A stretch of DNA of 64,000 bases from Podarcis filfolensis (taxonomy: Eukaryota): assembly GCA_964270895.1 (NCBI GenBank), contig OZ185440.1. One strand, 5' to 3'. Below, piece after piece: positions 3,133-29,412 of the stretch. Each line of letters begins with the position of its first letter. Within the stretch, counting starts at the first letter, position 1. Made by a program: the position numbers and the translations under genes. Below the pieces are notes generated by a model that saw only the letters and a list, made by a program, of their open reading frames with translations, was not told the DNA's origin and searched no databases.

Positions 3133-6100
3133 TATTGATACTTGGAAAATATAAACTAGCAGGTTAAACAACTCTGAGCCATATGATTTAGAGTCAACAC
3201 TGAAGTCTGCCAATGTAATTTTAGAGACAAGGATGAGGGCAAAAACAATGTCACTGCTTGATTAGTTCTGATACAGCCTTGTCTGAATGTACACGTATGT
3301 GGAAACTGGGGATAGTGCACTCTGTTTACATTATTACCTTCCATAGGGATGAACATATTAAATAAGTTTTGTTGGAAATGCCTTCCTTAGAGGGGAAGAA
3401 CTTATCTTGAAAATGGTAGTGAGCAGTTCATCTGGAAAACATCAAGGGCTATATAGTTATGTATATGGGGGGGGCAGGACTTATTAAGCATGATGGGAGA
3501 TGGTTTGGTAGTTCCAAGTAAATGTGTATGTTTGTCCTAGTGCAAGCTTTGGAGAAAAAAATCCCAGTTATGCAGTTTTCATCATGGTTCAATCTAAACT
3601 GCAGAAATTTCAGCTCTGGTGGATGCCTATTGGCTAGCACCCCCAGATTTGTACAAGGTGGCATAGATAGTTCAACATCTTAAAGCGGCGGGGGGGGGGG
3701 GTTGGGTAAGGTAATCTTGACACTTATTTTATGGAGATGAGACTTGCACACTTTTTGTGGCTAAAATGTGGTTAGAATGCATTTTGAATGCTCTTTGAGA
3801 AGACAATGAATCTAAAATATATTGATCCTACATCAGAAATAGGCTTCCGCTGAGTTCAGTGGGACTTGGTCCAAAGTAACAATGTATAAGGTGGTGGTAT
3901 CCAGAGAGCACTCTTTGTTGCGATGGCCAAATTGTACCAGGGTAGCTTCCATTGTTAGATGAGTTAGGCTGCTTTCCTAGCCTTGTTTTTGTGTATAGTT
4001 GAACTAGCCAAACTCTTGTATGAGTGTCTTCATTCAGCTCCATGGCAATGAGAAGGAGAAAAGGACTCCTGTGAACTTTTAAAACTGATTCTGTGAGGAG
4101 ATGAATCCTCATTGTGGCTTCATGCCCATTATTTTACTGCTCTTTAGAATTACAAGTTTGGAACATTTCAGCCATCTCCTACAGCAACATCATTCCCTAG
4201 AACTTGACAAAGATTGATTAAAACCTATTTAGTTTCTATTTTCTTTCTTTACAAAAAGGGGGGGGACCCCTTCCCTGGAATGACATCATATTTAGCTCAT
4301 AGTTGGTCATCTTTACTGGACACAAATTTTACATTCCCATTATGGGCTAAGAAAATAGAACAATTGCTGTGTGCTTGTTGGCAATCAGCCAGACTTGTAA
4401 GTCCTCCTAAAAAGAGCTCAAGTCACCAGCATGTACAGCTTTGCTACTATGGTGCAAATCTGGTCTCTTGGCAGAGATGAGGAGCTTGGAAAGGTTAAGA
4501 GAGTTTATCATAAGATAAACTTGCATGCCATCCACAGTCAGCTCATCAGATACTTCCAGGGCTAGATTTATTCTGTATTAATCTCCTGTGCCCCATAGAA
4601 TAAAGATATGTGACGTGACATCCATCAAATTATGCCCTCATGATAAAAAAGCAGTAATGGTCTCAGAAGTCGGCCCACTAGGCTGTCTTGGGTGAACCAT
4701 GCCCACTTCTCCTGTGCCCAATGACAGAAAAAGATGTTATATTCAAAAAGGGCAGAATTCAAGCCAAGGCTACAAAGAAAGCATCAGCGGTGCATTCCTG
4801 AGTCTTCCTTTGCAGCCATTGCTTAAATTTTTAAAGTATCTGATTCAATTTGGGATCACAAATGAAGGAACCATCTTCCTTTGCAGTTTCAGTCAGCTAA
4901 TGCCAGGTGACTGACAGGTAGGCATCCCTTCTCATCTGCCCAAGTGGCCCATGGAGGATTGGCCGCTACGCATCTGATTCTTTAGCCAGATCTAGTTCCT
5001 CAATCCTAATATAAATACACTGGAACACCATGCATTAGAATGATAGTTCCAGCTCAGGAAATTTTACACTGTCAAGGGTCAGGCGGCCTGCAGCAGTAGT
5101 AATGGTGGTAGTATTTGTTCATTCATTATTATTAATTAGGTCTCGTATCCTACACTTAATTATAAGGCCCCAAGCTGGGTTACAACAATGGAAAAATACA
5201 ATATTAAAATCAGTTAAAACAAGTATATTTATATAGTTAAAAGGCTCCCTTCTCCCTCATGCCTTCTTTGGTTTTATTCAATAATTGAAATGGGCTCAAC
5301 AATTAATGGGGTGGCCATGTGTCCTACTTTACATAGGACAATCTTCTGTTTGAGGACATCCTCTCTTGGGAGGACTATCTAGTCCAAGTTAAGTTTAAAA
5401 CCATAGGGAGGAGGAGCTGCAGGGTCTTCAACTTGCCCCTCAGGTGTGAGGACCTGAGACAGCAGACTGAGCAGGCACATAAGGTCACCTGGTCACTGTT
5501 TTTCCCATTGTGCTGTGCTGCATTGCATCTCTAAATAGCTGTACTTACCACATCTATATTTTGTTTGTTTGTTATGAATTTCTTCTTCTTTTTCAATGTG
5601 CAAGTGGCAACGCTTCAATAGAAAGGGGGGGCATCTACTAGATTTTATATGAAAGTGTATGACAGAATGTTCATTAAGATAATCCAATATAAGCACATTA
5701 GTGCTTTGTTTCTAAATGAACTTTCAAATTAATTTTGATTATATCCGGAGGATTTTGCAGGCAGCTTTCTTACACAATAGATGAAAAAAACCCAGTAAAG
5801 TGGTATCTTAAGAAGCTAACAGAATCTTTTAAGTCATGATACCCACCGTCTCTAAGGCTCAGGGTAATTCCAAATAGGACACCGTGTAGAATTGCCATTT
5901 TGCCCAGCTTGGTTTCTGGATCCTCAGTTACATTCCTGTCTGCACAGAGCGAGGTTTCCCCCCGCCCCAAGCCTGCAAAGTCTCTAGGGGAGAAAAACAA
6001 GGAGAGAGAAATAAATGTAATAAAGCAGATTAACGTCTTCCACATTCTCCTCTTCCCACTGCCGGCACTGATGAGAGAGGCTATCATTCACATAATGGGT

Positions 6101-6324
6101 TCATCTCTTCCTGCCAGTATTCCTTCCTGAGCTAATCCATCAAGCTCCATGGAAGAGCCGAAAGGAGAGGGGCAGCATCTCTGTGGGGGCCATGGAGCTA
6201 GGTTCTCCCCACTCAGCCTCCACCAGAAAGACCATTCCTTTGGTTTGCTCCAACCTCTCCGTTGACACCTCCACAAATCTGTGGTGATGTTAAAAATAGT
6301 TATGACGATGCAGAGATGCTAGTG

Positions 6325-6798: not shown

Positions 6799-6900
6799 TC
6801 ACACCGCTGTCTCTTGCTCAGCGCTGGGCTCTTCCTTCTTCCTCTTCATCTTGCAGAAGCCATGGAGCCCACAGAAGCAAGCAAAGGTGAACTGGGGCAT
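6799..6900 (-). CDS. BLACAT1: 33-aa micropeptide MPQFTFACFCGLHGFCKMKRKKEEPSAEQETAV (BLACAT1 small ORF orthologue)
   Basis: ATG at 6900-6898 and TGA at 6801-6799, 3 nt after a strong acceptor. Matches my recollection of the human BLACAT1 33-aa ORF (MPQFTFACFCGLHGFCKMKRKKEEVHRERETAV) in length, the first 24 residues and the last 4. It lies downstream of mir-135b on the same strand, as in human. Confidence 0.88.
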   Translation of the reverse strand: MPQFTFACFCGLHGFCKMKRKKEEPSAEQETAV

Positions 6901-7131
6901 CCCCTGGGACAGGCAAAGGACAGGAGCATCCAAGGAAATCTATGCAAAGTAAGGTGAGAGAAGAGAAAAGCTTGGGTTTCTTTCCCCGCTTTCCAGCAGA
7001 ACATCTCTTACTTTCACTTTAGAGCAGCGTTCCAAATGCTCAGTGCATTAGAGAACAGCGGGTTTTCCACCTACAATGAATCTCGGCTCCCCCACCTAAA
7101 ACCTCTACATACTGGGGGGGGACCAGGGACC

Positions 7132-7743: not shown

Positions 7744-10700
7744 GATTCAATCTACGATTCCTCCCCCCAAATTATAGTTTTGACACTCCCCACTTTTTTG
7801 TTGTTTTGTTCCCAAAAAAGGCCACCAGAAACTCATCTTTGAAAAAGCTGTTTCTGTAAATATTATGTGGAAAGGATTTCTTTTTGCAAACACTTCAATA
7901 TGAAATGCACACTGTGGCTGGGTTTGCCAGCGGCACCCCCCGCCCCCTGCACACCTGAAACCACATATGCCTTTCATGAATATACAGTTTAGGTATGGGT
8001 CGCCTCGCATCTCTCACATTAGAAATTAAGCACTGGGTGGCTGCCCCTCATCTCCATCATTCCGCCTCATTGTTTCTGACTATGGTCCAGTGACTCACAT
8101 ATTATCTTTGTGGTATGGTTGTTGCTGCAAAGCCACTCACCCACTTCTGGCTTCCATTTGGCATCAGTAATGTATGGATGTTCTAATCGTTCACCTTTCC
8201 TACACCAGCGTGGCTAGCTGAGGCGGCAGAGTACAGCTTCACCACTGTAGGTTTGATCCCCACATTGGGCATTTAGAATTGCTATCATGAATTTGGTATG
8301 TATTGACTCATTCATCCCTTCATTCACACGTTTTATATCCCAGCCTTTCTCGCAAACTATCTCAAGGCAGGTCACACTCAAATAAAAGATGCAATGAAAC
8401 CAGTCAATAAAACAATAACATCACCTCAAAAGATAGGTGGAGCAATGAGTGTAAAGGTTACCTTTGTAAAGGAGGCTAAATTCGACATACACGTACATCC
8501 CCCTGGGCTATTTTTCAGCCAGAACTTGGTGGAACTCAGTCCTGGCATCTCTCAGGTGGGTCTCATTGCCATTATAAGAGAACAAGGGAGGCTGTTCATA
8601 GTCAGTTTTGACACCTCTTTTCCTAGAAAAATAACACAGCATTCCCCCCTCCCAACTCTCAGTCCTCCATCCAGGCAAGCAAAAGGCGTGATCATGAATC
8701 AACGTTAAGCAATGGCTTGGAGGCCAACTTAACCATGAAGAATATGAACTAAGCGACAGCTTTTGAGGTTGGCCTTATTGCAGAGCAATGTGAAGCAATG
8801 TGGGCACCAGTCATTTCCCTCACTCCATCTCTGCGATGTTGTTTTTAAAATGAGGTTTCATCTTAAGATGAAAAGATGTCTAGGGCCTGAACTTCTCGTA
8901 GGGAACATAGAGACTCCAGCAAAGCCCTAACAATTATTTTCTTTGCACAAAGCTTGTGAAGTAAAATCAAACATACGGAGTCCAAATGACTTTTTTCTTC
9001 TCCCCGCCAGCGCCCCCACCACCATTCGCACTCCTGCCCCCACCGAATCACAGCATTCCAATCTGCGAATTACCTCAGCCAGATGAAAAAAGAAAAGGCG
9101 AAAGCCAAAATCCCCGGTTTGCCATGGTTGCTCTTCAATAGCTCGGCTAGCACTCAGGGCATGATTAAGCCCTCCAAGGTTACAGGGAATATTTGACTGA
9201 CCTTCTAACTTCAAACACAGCCGCTAGGCATTCATTAAATAACCCTTCAGCACCTCAGAACAGTCAGTTCCACATGGCAATAAAAATTGCATCCCTCCCA
9301 TCCTGTAACCTGGGAACCAGAGGAGGCTCGCTTTATCCTTTCTGTTTCAGCCTGACCTTGTCTTTGCAGTGACAGGCCCTGCCTTCAGCACAAAGCAGTC
9401 CCTGTGCAGATAAGCAAGACAAATGCACACCTCCCATTGAACTCACTTATTCAGCTGCACGCTCACCACCCCCACCCCCAGTTTCATTTGACAGGTTTTG
9501 GTATACCTGTCTGCCAGACACCTAGTTTAAATAAGGCCCCTGATGCTTCCTCTGAGACTCACAAAGCAATGACTAGGGACTCCTTAATGAGTCTTCCTGT
9601 CTGCAAGGTTTGTGAGCAGACCGCCAGCTCTGTGCCTCTCTCAGCTGCTTATATTGCATTCGTGCAAAAGAGTTTTCTGAGGTAATGGCCAGGAGAGAGC
9701 CAGTTCTACCAAACGAAGCTGTTGCAAGGCTAGTTATGCAGCCACAAAAGTGAACTCATTCTTTGCTTTCAGCCTGCAATTTTGCTGTCAATCCTCTCTA
9801 GGTAAATGGCATTGTCAGAAAGTGTTAGAATAGCTTAGTCGACACCAGATTCCATTAAAGGAAGGCAAAGAAAATAGGAAAAAGGAAACCCACTTTCTAT
9901 GGACATCCTTAAATTTTCAGCTTCTGTGTTTATATTCCCTCCCCTCTGGTTTTCATGTTAAAAACAAAAACACTTCCTAAAACCAAAGTAGAGGAATAAA
10001 ATGAATGCCAAACATCACACATCACCAGAGAAATCACAGTTTTTAAGCCATTTTATTTTCTTAAGTTTTTTTATTGCATACTTTGAATACATAGCATAAG
10101 GAAAAGTGTATTTAAATACCATGTGTACACTCAGGAAGAAAGTGTGTCACATACTGTTTTTTATTGTGTTGTGTTCTGAAATGGTTTCAAAACTTCTTTT
10201 ACTATAAATGTCTGCAAAGCATAACGCTGTTTAAAAGAGGGCATAAGATCTTAATTTTTTAAAAGAAAAGTAAAAATACTCGAAAATGTCATGTTTGCAC
10301 CTGCAACATCAGGCACTCTCCATCTGGTCTTCATCTCCTTATTTGACAGTCTGAAGGGCTGTGGTGGATTTCAAGTTGTCCGTGGCCTACAATACGCACC
10401 TGCTGTTAATAAATATATAATTTAAAGTACATGTGTATCAAGTGTCATAAGAGAGCACAACTCATCAGAACTAAATGATGCAAACAAATTGCTTCCACTG
10501 GGCTCAATGCTAACGTGTCCTGCTAAATAATTTTGGAAGCTTTGGTTTCCAAAGTTAATATATTTTTCAACTAAGTATTCAGGATAGATGCCCTGCTGCT
10601 TTTGGATTTGAAAGAGGAAAAGTATTTTTATTTTATGTGTTTGCTTTCCCCAGCTTAATGTGGCTTTCCACTTTTACCTGAGCACCTAAAACTATTTTCT

Positions 10701-11705: not shown

Positions 11706-13289
11706 TACTGTCGAAAGGGAAGCCGTGGCAAAGACAATAATCTGCTTACATTGTAGCATGAGATTGCCTGCTAATGGGATAGAGTATATACCAAAGTACC
11801 TGAGGTACATTTGCTTGCTGGAAGACCTGGGTGGTCTGAACGACAAGAGCCCCAATTCCATTAGGGAGCTATTGATGTATTTAGGAAAGCTTGTAGCATG
11901 GAGCCTTTTAAAACTGACCCTCCACTTTCCATTCGGGGGCAGACAATGATGAACGAGCCTGGAAGAACAGAGGCAGCACAGCTGAGTCAAATGCTCCTGT
12001 TCTTCTTGAAAATGGAGAAAAGGGATCTTTTAAGGAGTGAGGAATAATTAAAAAATAAATGAACTAGCGCTAGTGGAGTGACAGATGCCCTACTTGATTT
12101 GCAAAATCCAAGCATGTTTCATGGCCCTGTTCTGCCCTTTCTATTCAAGGGAGAGGATCCTTTGAATAGAACCCTCTGCAGCCAAGAAAATGTGGTGAGC
12201 ATTAAAAATGTAAAACCAAAGAATTCTCTTTAGTCATTTGCTTAACCTCAGACTGTGTTTGTCACTGTCAGAGTGATGAATTGGGAGCTGTCTGAAATCA
12301 GCATGCTCACTTTAATAATGTCACTTTCCCTGAGCTCTAATAAATGTCTTTCTGAACCAGCTGGACAGAACCAATTCCTTAGACCAACAATTACCGATTT
12401 CACCAGGTTTTTGCTCTTCTTAACAGTTAGGGCCCTGCTGCTGAAATTGGAAATCTTTATCCATTTTCACACATTCTCCCAGCCACGAGGAAAGGAGGAG
12501 ATCCAGTTTGTTAAAGCCCTACACAAGGAATTAGAGGGAAATTGTCCTATGGAAAGAGCAAGGAAATGGACTGATTTTTAATTCCCGTTTCCACCACCGA
12601 CACAAAAAGTATATATTGGTAAGGGAACTATTCTTCTCTTGGAGTATGCCTTCTTGGGGCATATCTACTATGTGTCCAGGAAAAGTGCAGGAGCAAACAT
12701 TAGAATATAAATGGACTCCTTCAAAGGAGCCTGCTCTGACCAAATCATGGATAATAGTCAATACAGGCAGAGCATGATGTCATGACCACATATTTAGTCC
12801 TGATCACATGAGTGCATCAATCTCTCTAAGATCTACACTGAAAAGATTAGACTAGCCAGCCATCAAATCTTCAACCACAGAAATGATTGTTTTGTATCAG
12901 ATGATTACAGGCCTGTATAATTTAAGGGTGCATCTCTATGCCTGGATGCCATTTAAAAAATCCAGGAATATGAGGATGTTGGTAAATAACATTACACCAC
13001 CATTTAAAATAAACAATGATTTAATGAGCACGTACACTTTTGTTCCTGTCCTGCTCTTCACAGCCAGAGTCAGGATTGTCACAGTGTGCAAACCTGGGCT
13101 GAGGGTTTGTTTGGAGAGAAGGAAATGATAAGCCTACATAGGCCCATGGGCTTGTTTCCTCACCTGCATGGTTTAACATGGCATGTGAACTGGGTCTATA
13201 AACCTGCATGTTTGAACTGCCAGGCAATAAAGGAAACACAAAATAAACTTTAACTGTATCAACATTTGACCAAGAAAACTGCAGACAAA

Positions 13290-13984: not shown

Positions 13985-16372
13985 TATACAAAGTTAAGGT
14001 ACCTACATGCAATTTATTAGCCTCATCCTCATCATTATTATTGCCAGCTGCAACTTGCCTGAGTTGAAATTGTACTGATTTGCTCTCCCTACCCCACCCC
14101 TGATGTGAGCTGCTTTGAGTACATTCAAATGGAAAAGCGGTAAAGAAAAATAAATTCCCTATTCAGTGTAATAATAGGAGCGGTTTTATTAGTTGCCATT
14201 TTAGTCTGCTGGTTATTTATATATCACATTTTATGGTTTGATTGCCATGTAACTCACCCTAGGACCTTTTGGTGAAGGGCAGATAATAAATATTTGTGAC
14301 GCAGGAGACCCAGCCTCTCAGGTATCCAGGGGCACTAACAAAAGCTCTCACACCAAACCACCTTGATTCTATTCAGTCTGAAATAGGGAGCAGAGGATAG
14401 AACAATGTACTATCCGAGTCAGGGCGAGTGGGTCCAACCACAAAAGGAAGCAAGGCTCCTGCACTTTAAACATGTGTGTAGAAGAGGGAAATTCAACAGG
14501 TGTAGCAATAAAAGCTACACCTGTTGAAATCCCCTCTTCTAAACAAGTCTTCAAGGTACAGGAGCCCGGCTTCCTTTTGTGTCTGGGCACGCTTGCAGGG
14601 ATAGTGGTTTGCGGGCTAGATCAATGGGGGAGACCCTCTCGGTCTAATTTTGCCTCTCTGGATCATTGCGATGATAACATGAGATAACTCCTACATATGC
14701 TGCTCTGAGCTCCTTCAAGGAAGGCTACAGTGCTAACATTTTTCCCCCTTCCCCGACCCTCCTATTCTTAATTTCTATGTCCCTTTCTTTTCCTGGCCTT
14801 CTTGTATTAACCGCCAGCCTAAGAAATATACACACATATCACAACAGCACATACCACCCACCTCTTGTGTTAAAAAAAAGCCTTAAAAAAGAAATAAACT
14901 CAATTAGCAAAGGGAAGCACTGGCTCTTTAAAAGGAAATAATGGTGCCTATACAGCTGGCGTTTCAGGTTGCAGTGTTTGCAGAGAACCACTAATTAAAA
15001 CATTGCTTCTGTAAAGTATGCTGATCCCATTGATTCCAATCCCAACCCCAACCCCCCCTCAGCCTTCATATACACACAGTTAATTTGCTGCTAGGAAAGC
15101 AAAGTCGCAAGGGTCCTCATTATAAAAATTTCACTGGCTGCAGCTAATGGTTGTAATTAATAGGTGCAATAAATTTCAAATGGCCAGCCAGGGTGTTCAT
15201 TAGTTTCAGCCTGAGTCAGCACCAGTGGGGTAGCCTGTTACTTAATAACCCATTTTCTAACTAACTGAAAGGGAGGGTGGGGAGGGTTCGACCCACCCAG
15301 CTATGGTTCAACACAACCAGAATTCTCTCGTCTCACTTGCCAAAAAGAGACAGAGCTGAGTAAATCATTTGCAGAGAACAATCTCCAATTGGACACACCT
15401 GCTTGCCCCAGTTGCGTAAGAATGAGGCAGGGCAATCCAGATTGTATGTTAGCCAACAGGCCAATGTACACAGCCACCTGCAACAATTTGGCCAGATCAC
15501 TTAAACACACACACAAGAAAAAAAATCCAGTGTATCATTAGTTACAACTAGGGACAGCACAGTTGTTAACTGTCAGCTCCAAGGAGGTAAAAATAAAAGC
15601 CTGACATGCTTGAGATATTGCTGAGCATAAGGAAGTTGGTTAATGTAGTGTATCTACTAGCTACATTTTCAAACAACAGACATCTGCTTCTGTGTTAAGC
15701 AGCAAAGTACATCACTATTGTGATTAGGTTTCCTGTAGGAGCAGGGCTCCTGTATCTTTAATACTTATGCAGGAGTTACGTTTTGGGAACTCTGCGAGCA
15801 TAAGTGAAATCATGTAAAGTGAGGAGTACTTTCCAAATGCCCTCTCTGCCACTCTCTCTTCCATCCATACCAAAAATATCCACAACTAGAATTGAAGGAG
15901 GCTGGAGGATGTGTGGGAAAGCGGTGATGACAACAACGCTGCCCCGCATGCCAGCTGTTAGAGGGAAGGCTGAGCAGCTTAAACAAAGGCCCACTGCACC
16001 TCCAGTCTCTTCAAGACTTCCTCCGCCTTCGCTGATGTCCTCTTTGGGCTCTGGGGAGGGTCTCCTCATGAGCCACGAGGACTCTCCAGCTCTCACCCAC
16101 CATTTCCTGGTTTGAATTGAATTATTTAATTATTCCCCGGTGTTTGTGCATGTTATGCTGTCGTGCACAAGTCAATTGTGCATAAGTGTGGGGGGGGGGG
16201 GAGTCTGTAATAAATAACAAAGTGGGCCCGGCAACACCATGTTGCGCTGTGGAGTCCTGCTGTTCCATCTGGGGTGGCCACTCACCCCTGCCCAAGGGAA
16301 TGCAACCCTTGTCGGAAAATAAAGGTTCCCTAGCCCTGCTTTCCTGAGAGATTTCAAGAGCAATGTCCAGTA

Positions 16373-19844: not shown

Positions 19845-20823
19845 AGAAGCTGATAAGACCATGCTAAAATGCCCAGATTTTGGTATATCAGGCTCTCCAA
19901 ATGTACTGTGAAGGGGCTCTCTCCAACAATATTCTATCAAAATTCAGCTGATTGTCTTTTTGGCAGAGTATGCTTAAAAGCAACAATCCTTCTTAAGCAG
20001 AGGCAGATCCGCCGTACTCAGTGGGACATAAGAAACATGTTTAGGACTGTGCTGTGAGAGTGTCATCAGAAATCAGAACTCCACATGTATGTTTGTACCC
20101 ATAAGTTTGGCACCACATACATATTAAGGAGCAGGGCTTTTTATGTTGCACTTTTAAAAGGAAGCAGTCTTCATTTGCAGATTCCCTAGCGGCAGCAAAT
20201 CCATGTCTTCCGGAGTGGTGGTCTAAAAACTATTGTAACTGTGCTGTGGGCTGAAAAGTCAAACTTTTCGATTTCTTAGCTTCCCTCAGCTGTTGGCTGG
20301 GACACCTGTGGAACCTGACTGTGAGAAAGGAGAAAGTATCTCTAATTACCTGGTAGCTGCTCTCGGCACGCCTAGTTAACCACCATCACTCGGTGTATCT
20401 TTCATGGTAATGGCTCTGCATTCTGCTCAGAGCATTTATTATGTTGGGCTTTTTGCGAGGCAATGGAATCTTTGGGCCCTGGGTTTGAAAGCAGAGGTTT
20501 GGTGTGGGTTTTTCTTAAAAAAAGGAAACGTCTCACAACAACTGAGCTGTACCCTGAGCACTGCAGTGGCTGTTCTGGCCTCTGGATGGAGAGAAGAAGC
20601 CCAGAAGTATAGAGACCAGTCCCTTCACCTCTGTACGTTCATTTGCTAAGTATTCCTTGCCACATTCACCCAGCTAAGTCTCGCTATACCCTAGCCTCTT
20701 TTTCATTCGCCGTTGGTTACAAAATAAATATGGATGTTTGGTTTTATTAAATGAAGGAGGGATAGCATTAAGGAATCTGTATTTCACACAGCTTTGCTGA
20801 GGTGCCCAAGAAAGTGGATTATT

Positions 20824-20909
20824 CCTCTGTGTAGCCCATGGCTTTTAGCCCTACATGAGTTATGAAAAGCAATCACATAGGAATAAAAAGCCATAGACCA
20901 CAGCAGAGG
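20824..20909 (-). ncRNA. MIR135B: pre-mir-135b (mir-135 family, BLACAT1/LEMD1-locus paralogue)
   Basis: 5p arm UAUGGCUUUUUAUUCCUAUGUGA at 20895-20873 (miR-135a-5p-type sequence). 3p arm AUGUAGGGCUAAAAGCCAUGGG at 20856-20835 (the miR-135b-3p sequence). Flanks CUCUGCUGUGG / GCUACA are as in mir-135b. The arms pair as an 86-nt hairpin. Confidence 0.97.
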
Positions 20910-29341: not shown

Positions 29342-29412
29342 TGCATTGACCAAGAATTAAGCCTGGGCCTCCTGAATGGCAGTCAAGAATTCTACCACTG
29401 AACCACCAATAC
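29342..29412 (-). pseudogene. Full-length tRNA-Gly(GCC) pseudogene (71 nt)
   Basis: Minus strand GTATTGGTGGTTCAGTGGTAGAATTCTTGACTGCCATTCAGGAGGCCCAGGCTTAATTCTTGGTCAATGCA aligns without gaps to vertebrate tRNA-Gly-GCC at about 58/71. Changes are mostly transitions, and the T-loop/B box is broken. Confidence 0.88.

Follow-up and report, generated by a model that had tools for sequence, protein, structure and literature searches.

The question raised by this locus is whether a frame of 33 codons in lizard DNA encodes a protein and, if it does, what so small a protein could do. The frame lies on the minus strand of a 64,000-nucleotide stretch of Podarcis filfolensis DNA (contig OZ185440.1; hereafter the window), in which no runs of N are found, and occupies positions 6799-6900, with the ATG at 6900-6898, 33 codons and a TGA stop at 6801-6799. 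The minus strand reads ...tcctttgcctgtcccag/ggg ATG CCC CAG ... GCG GTG TGA (here and below, a slash marks a candidate splice site), and the translation is MPQFTFACFCGLHGFCKMKRKKEEPSAEQETAV. The 33-codon frame had been described in the first-pass annotation, whose coordinates, acceptor string and peptide all agree exactly with the minus strand. As the window contains 376 ATG-initiated frames of at least 33 codons, length alone would make this frame no more than what is expected by chance; it is raised above chance because it is conserved across species.

A protein search with the 44-aa open frame as the query retrieved 43 proteins, nearly all of which are named as BLACAT1 proteins ("bladder cancer associated transcript 1") by NCBI/UniProt. 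The best match was the 54-aa RefSeq protein of Podarcis muralis and P. raffonei (E = 8e-23), and bird, mammal and amphibian proteins matched with E values of 1e-10 to 1e-16; a profile search with an alignment led by the same frame agreed. Other matches to the 44-aa query came from other lizards, a turtle, an alligator, many birds, mammals, frogs and a newt, and exhaustive HMMER and profile searches added a mormyrid, characiforms, zebrafish, loach, platypus, axolotl and catshark. The catshark peptide is 33 aa long and identical to the Podarcis peptide over residues 1-16. The top HMMER match, which is 796 aa long and contains 10 short repeats matching residues 7-21, was rejected as a repetitive metagenomic ORF that is unrelated and similar only in low-complexity sequence.

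In DNA sequence the window shares about 98% identity with P. raffonei and about 94% with P. muralis, and the 102-nt ORF is nucleotide-identical in all three. The window peptide has the polybasic stretch, the E-T-x-V end and the TGA stop of vertebrate BLACAT1 (Podarcis RefSeq XP_053249292.1 and XP_077785137.1, and the models of Danio rerio and Scyliorhinus), its 33-aa core does not differ from that of the P. muralis and P. raffonei models, and a mir-135 hairpin lies upstream of it on the same strand. There is no substantive difference, the window genome being about 2% diverged from P. raffonei and the retrieved Podarcis protein being an extended isoform of 54 aa, not the 33-aa core itself. Residues 1-16 of the window peptide equal the family consensus, including the N-terminal motif MPQFTFACFCGLHG[FL]C, and the remainder follows the family layout, with KMKRKK after Cys16, an acidic linker (EEPSAEQ) and a length of 33 aa, which is also that of 37 of the 48 distinct core family peptides (range of 33 to 38 aa). 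The BLACAT1 identity proposed in the first-pass annotation is borne out by non-human eutherian orthologues, whose residues 1-24 are identical and whose C-terminus is likewise ETAV. The proposal that the gene was a hidden one is not, as RefSeq and UniProt name the protein in P. muralis, P. raffonei, Zootoca and dozens more vertebrates; and of the proposal of an amniote-conserved coding gene the coding conservation stands, whereas the limit to amniotes falls with the orthologues in catshark, teleosts and amphibians. We hold it as nearly certain that positions 6799-6900 on the minus strand are the Podarcis orthologue of vertebrate BLACAT1, that its peptide is under purifying selection and that it is conserved throughout gnathostomes. 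Both the gene and the fact that it is coding are on record in RefSeq/UniProt, this genus included, and the lizard copy is an ordinary orthologue; for a lizard genome it is a routine, expected orthologue of an annotated vertebrate gene.

Coding selection was quantified with orthologous DNA from 11 taxa, including the Podarcis window, a cordylid lizard, a turtle, four birds, a marsupial, a frog and two teleosts. Every orthologous DNA, including that of the turtle and the birds, in which an equivalent ORF had been called for by the first-pass annotation, was found to carry an intact ORF of 33-36 codons terminated by TGA in its genomic reading. In a GY codon model on the species tree, omega was 0.075 for these 11 taxa, a sample without cartilaginous fish and without the DNA of Lissotriton, Alligator, Pelobates and catshark, and constraining omega to 1 cost 55 log-likelihood units (2dlnL = 110, p about 1e-25). 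Pairwise dN/dS among sauropsids ranged from 0.02 to 0.07 at dS values that began at 0.26 and reached saturation. Within codons 1-16, variation is found at 13 third positions, one first position and no second position. These values, all far below 1, and the bias toward third positions uphold the earlier claims that the peptide is under purifying selection and that the supposed lncRNA is a coding gene. The conservation is also sharply bounded. Identity to the window is 70-96% over the ORF and 83-96% over codons 1-16, and falls to mostly 10-50% in the flanks, where it is higher only next to the ORF and in the closest taxa. BLASTN alignments of the frog and the mormyrid start exactly at the ATG and those of tetrapods end exactly at the stop, and conservation begins at 6913 in bird, 6905 in marsupial and 6900 in both frog and fish. 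Length (33-38 codons) and stop position are retained between shark and mammal.

All 11 taxa, teleosts and marsupial included, terminate the ORF with TGA, although a single transition would turn TGA into TAA. Conserved read-through past this TGA was considered and ruled out, as identity over the next 50 nt is 12-44% in turtle, birds and marsupial. The last codons, G/GTNTGA, resemble a splice donor and are used as such in the gene model of Metynnis, an 88-aa model that we dismiss as an artefact in which the GT within the last codons was taken as a donor.

The peptide can be divided into a hydrophobic head, a basic patch and an acidic tail, with a mean hydropathy of +1.5 for the head and net charges of +5 and -4 for the patch and the tail, respectively. 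In an alignment of 22 sequences, C8, C10, C16, G11, H13, G14, K19, K21, K22, T31 and V33 are invariant. The hydrophobic residues 1-16 are nearly invariant, and the first 14 are invariant from shark to mammal. C8, C10 and C16 lie in FTFACFCGLHGFC, which is followed by KMKRKK (+5), so that the cysteines are in a hydrophobic context adjoining a basic cluster; the linker that precedes E-T-x-V is acidic and variable. No Pfam family was found for the peptide, only sub-threshold bacterial look-alikes were returned by the ESM Atlas, and AlphaFold2 with 22 orthologues gave a low-confidence model (pLDDT 54) with no secondary structure. That the gene is a coding BLACAT1 and, jointly with this, that its product generally consists of a membrane-associated head and a PDZ-ligand tail is in our judgment highly probable.

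The carboxyl end of the window peptide is T31-A32-V33 (ETAV) directly followed by TGA, which agrees with the class I pattern [S/T]-x-hydrophobic with a free carboxylate. This conserved E-T-x-V end, which was absent from the first-pass annotation, is by its sequence and by analogy a putative class I PDZ ligand. Of 77 gene models, 69 end exactly at E-T-x-V. Among these 69 the residues at -3 (E), -2 (T) and 0 (V) are constant, a result in which only the use of T over S is an independent observation, since sequences were cut at the motif by a pattern that already demanded E, S/T and V. An acidic residue (E or D) occupies position -5 in 36 of the 48 distinct peptides. The PDZ domains bound by DGKzeta (SNX27, syntrophin/PSD-95 class), by ATAD-3 (DLG-1 PDZ2) and by synthetic ETAV inhibitors (PSD-95 PDZ1/2) prefer acidic residues, a preference that the E at -3 and the mostly acidic -5 of BLACAT1 match. 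The ETAV of DGKzeta binds SNX27 (PMC8790036), ETAV ligands bind PDZ1 and PDZ2 of PSD-95 with Ki of 2-4 uM (PMC4503980), and the ETAV of Caenorhabditis elegans ATAD-3 binds PDZ2 of DLG-1 (PMC4977824). In DGKzeta, ATAD-3 and the synthetic inhibitors of PSD-95 PDZ1/2, the last four residues and the free carboxyl are identical to those of BLACAT1. They are analogues and not homologues, however, being large proteins or synthetic peptides, and binding by BLACAT1 is only putative.

The invariant C8, C10, C16, K19, K21 and K22 fit the putative anchor of S-acylation and a basic patch that was suggested in the first-pass annotation, to which we add the display of a PDZ ligand. We propose that the three-cysteine hydrophobic head (residues 1-16) and KMKRKK may hold the peptide at the cytosolic face of a membrane, probably via S-acylation of Cys8, Cys10 and/or Cys16 plus electrostatics, and that the short acidic linker may present the free E-T-x-V C-terminus to Dlg/PSD-95-type or SNX27-type PDZ proteins. 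Such a small membrane-bound peptide might be an adaptor or cargo tag, or might compete for PDZ scaffolds. The N-termini of GAP-43 and PSD-95 are dual-palmitoylation plus basic motifs, and those of GAP-43 (MLCCMRRTK) and PSD-95 (MDCLCIVTTKKYR) resemble the BLACAT1 head in having C-x-C or CC in a hydrophobic N-terminus that is followed by a basic cluster. Sequence homology is absent, however, their cysteines lie at positions 3-5 rather than at 8, 10 and 16, BLACAT1 differs from both in the invariant G-L-H-G between its cysteines, and its acylation is only putative. The S-acylated tether is the most economical model because the head is too short and polar for a standard transmembrane helix and because AlphaFold predicts no fold. 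As a detailed mechanism, an acylated tether that displays a PDZ ligand is a tentative proposal based on motif resemblance, to which we give somewhat less than an even chance. Fourteen residues, including G11, H13 and G14, that remain invariant over approximately 450 million years exceed the needs of a generic lipid anchor and thus point to a specific partner or cofactor, which the anchor model leaves unnamed. A generic anchor does not account for the invariant G-L-H-G, and a metal site or a specific membrane partner is a live alternative.

The first of these alternatives, which we consider unlikely, holds that C-x-C-x2-H-x2-C (C8, C10, H13 and C16) binds Zn or Cu, possibly across a dimer. It would explain why His13 and the three cysteines are invariant in the 22 sequences and kept in catshark and zebrafish, an invariance that a plain acyl anchor would not need, and it would make use of four potential ligands within 9 residues. 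To our knowledge the spacing matches no zinc-knuckle or zinc-ribbon pattern, which we count against the metal site. The surrounding bulky aromatics are also typical of membrane-interface segments, and a fold is absent from the AlphaFold model. If a metal were bound, the peptide could be a soluble or peripheral, Cys-rich, PDZ-binding mini-protein like CRIPT and not a lipid-anchored one, which we likewise find improbable. CRIPT binds the PDZ domain of PSD-95 through a C-terminal class I motif. Its likeness to BLACAT1 consists in being small and Cys-rich with a conserved C-terminal class I motif; CRIPT is, however, about 100 aa long, contains CXXC zinc motifs and is unrelated to BLACAT1 in sequence, and similarity searches gave no connection between them.

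An alternative that we find no more persuasive than the metal site is that the N-terminal segment is a true transmembrane helix, oriented N-out and C-in by the positive-inside rule, which would make the product a single-pass micropeptide like the SERCA regulators or the SMIM proteins, its PDZ ligand still facing the cytosol. A single membrane pass is found in many conserved micropeptides, and the +5 basic cluster directly after the hydrophobic head is where such a topology would place it. The uncharged stretch is 13-16 residues long, however, and includes His13, Gly11 and Gly14, while about 18-20 residues are needed to cross a bilayer, and AlphaFold predicts no helix. The peptide thus falls short of the hydrophobic helix of at least about 18-20 residues that characterizes the SERCA-regulin/SMIM single-pass class.

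With the S-acylated tether kept as the preferred model, it may be asked whether the 33 codons are the whole product. Immediately upstream of the ATG, a pyrimidine-rich tract and AG form a putative splice acceptor (6904-6925, minus strand; AG at 6905-6904), from which an exon would begin at 6903, 3 nt before the start codon. AG is found at -5/-4 relative to the ATG in 10 of the 11 taxa, from teleost to marsupial and including both teleosts, which supports the candidate acceptor at 6903, and an intron that ends 3 nt before the start codon is plausible from the sequence. The smORF frame is also open upstream to 6939, and the minus-strand stretch 6901-6939 is the in-frame upstream part of RefSeq isoform X1, with an acceptor catag/ATT and an exon start at 6939, which is 36 nt upstream of 6903; the sole Podarcis model examined uses 6939. 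The other part of isoform X1 is an upstream alternative exon end at 8141-8164 (minus strand), which encodes MPNGSQKW, matches the N-terminus of the 54-aa Podarcis protein and has a donor tgg/gtgagt with the GT at 8140-8139; it is weakly conserved, being 70% identical to that of Hemicordylus. Joining the exon that ends at 8141 to the acceptor at 6939 gives the 54 aa of X1. That the lizard gene is transcribed, spliced and translated is inferred from its conservation and from RefSeq models.

At 6929-6927 (minus strand), between the candidate acceptors at 6939 and 6903, Hemicordylus and turtle share with the window an ATG that is out of frame. It opens an overlapping ORF of 52 codons if the acceptor at 6939 is used, and it is spliced out if that at 6903 is used.

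The functional product could accordingly be longer, the 33 codons being the C-terminal part of N-terminally extended isoforms, among them the 54-aa X1 with its start at 8164. The open frame and the exon that ends at 8141, whose good donor supplies an in-frame ATG, would allow for this, and extended isoforms are annotated by RefSeq in lizards, birds, a crocodilian and mammals. The extensions, however, are unalike between clades (ISLDAPVLCLSQG in lizards, ...PLLLQV in birds and ...PPSLAQG in mammals) and resemble a translated pyrimidine tract plus acceptor, the 33-aa model is that of most species and of 37 of the 48 distinct core peptides, and conservation with distant taxa starts at the ATG. 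Because the upstream extensions differ by clade and conservation sets in at the Met, we take the product of 33 aa as the conserved one, and a longer functional product is very unlikely. It is still harder to credit a secreted prepropeptide whose signal peptide would be residues 1-16 and in which cleavage by a convertase at KMKRKK would release the acidic C-terminal undecapeptide in active form: a multibasic site does follow a hydrophobic N-terminus, but conservation is highest in the would-be signal peptide and lowest in the would-be product, the reverse of what real prepropeptides show, a positively charged n-region is absent and E-T-x-V is a motif of cytosolic type.

Least credible of all is that the block is conserved for a non-coding cause, such as lncRNA structure, an enhancer or a splicing element, with the ORF incidental to it: the cancer literature does treat BLACAT1 as a nuclear lncRNA and describes it as non-coding (PMC7445530), and the locus contains further conserved non-coding blocks, but nearly all changes fall in third positions, omega is 0.075 with omega = 1 rejected at p about 1e-25, the edges of conservation are the ATG and the stop, and the length of 33-38 codons and the position of the stop are constant from shark to mammal. 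The codon pattern, the low omega and the edges at ATG and stop rule out a purely non-coding explanation and fix both frame and strand. As the sole explanation a non-coding cause is thus refuted by the codon pattern, which leaves room for an additional role of the RNA.

The 33-aa coding product of BLACAT1 lies near a microRNA. A mir-135 precursor hairpin is found at 20823-20909 on the minus strand (Rfam RF00246, full-length, 81.7 bits, E = 1.2e-16), 14 kb upstream of the smORF and on the same strand. Its 5p arm has U at position 11, where human miR-135b-5p has C, and would hence be identical to miR-135a-5p. Its 3p arm is the sequence printed for miR-135b-3p (PMC11930451). Human miR-135b is within an intron of LEMD1 at 1q32.1 (PMC11930451), and human BLACAT1 is also at 1q32.1, between LEMD1 and CDK18 (PMC7445530). 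A same-strand mir-135 with a miR-135b-3p arm is consistent with the window being the counterpart of the human 1q32.1 locus. No LEMD1 or CDK18 exons were recognised within the window, where short exons would escape the tools used, and mir-135 is the one element on which synteny with the human locus would depend. No Pfam family was found in any of the 19 window ORFs of at least 110 aa, which look like translations of non-coding DNA.

A bolder view would make this a two-product gene since the early jawed vertebrates, in which a single primary transcript gives rise to miR-135b and also to a lipid-anchored microprotein with a PDZ ligand, the two acting in the same pathway. MiR-135 represses APC, and the C-terminal T-S-V of APC binds DLG. 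A membrane-tethered ETAV peptide that competes for the PDZ pockets of Dlg/SNX27 might then be the protein arm of a joint action on this polarity/Wnt axis. We regard this as a long shot; if it were true, many cancer phenotypes ascribed to the "BLACAT1 lncRNA" could reflect the peptide.

Literature searches for a BLACAT1 peptide or microprotein, for coding evidence and for the peptide string returned no study of the peptide, and the BLACAT1 papers found, including a review (PMC7445530), treat the locus as an lncRNA. Annotation and literature are thus at odds, as a conserved 33-aa protein that ends in a tetrapeptide proven as a PDZ ligand is encoded at a locus described as a non-coding cancer RNA, and a role of the peptide could reassign some of the reported effects of BLACAT1 to a protein. 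What is added here to the existing annotation is a quantitative test of selection, the finding that conservation reaches cartilaginous and ray-finned fishes, a conserved candidate acceptor adjoining the ATG and the recognition of the PDZ-ligand end.

Other parts of the locus are also conserved. A block at 11857-12392, between mir-135 and the smORF exon, is 81% identical to the bird locus over 543 nt and in part matches that of a marsupial; its bird counterpart is approximately 2 kb upstream of the bird smORF. No consistent ORF was found in this block, which is likely to be a conserved non-coding element or a non-coding exon. Two more blocks upstream of the smORF are 77% identical to Sminthopsis over 182 nt (15078-15259) and 66% identical to turtle over 668 nt, with a 98-nt core common to bird (9125-9745). 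Downstream of the stop, blocks 5761-6196 and 3909-4648 are 72-78% identical to Hemicordylus, and 5967-6145 also matches turtle; they are consistent with a long conserved 3'UTR or with downstream exons. The first canonical AATAAA past the stop, a candidate poly(A) signal, is at 5273-5278 on the minus strand, 1.5 kb downstream of the stop, and the Hemicordylus-conserved sequence at 5761-6196 falls between the two. Elsewhere in the window, a tRNA-like sequence at 29342-29412 (minus strand) scores 47.9 bits against the Rfam tRNA model and may be a tRNA gene, a pseudogene or a tRNA-derived SINE.
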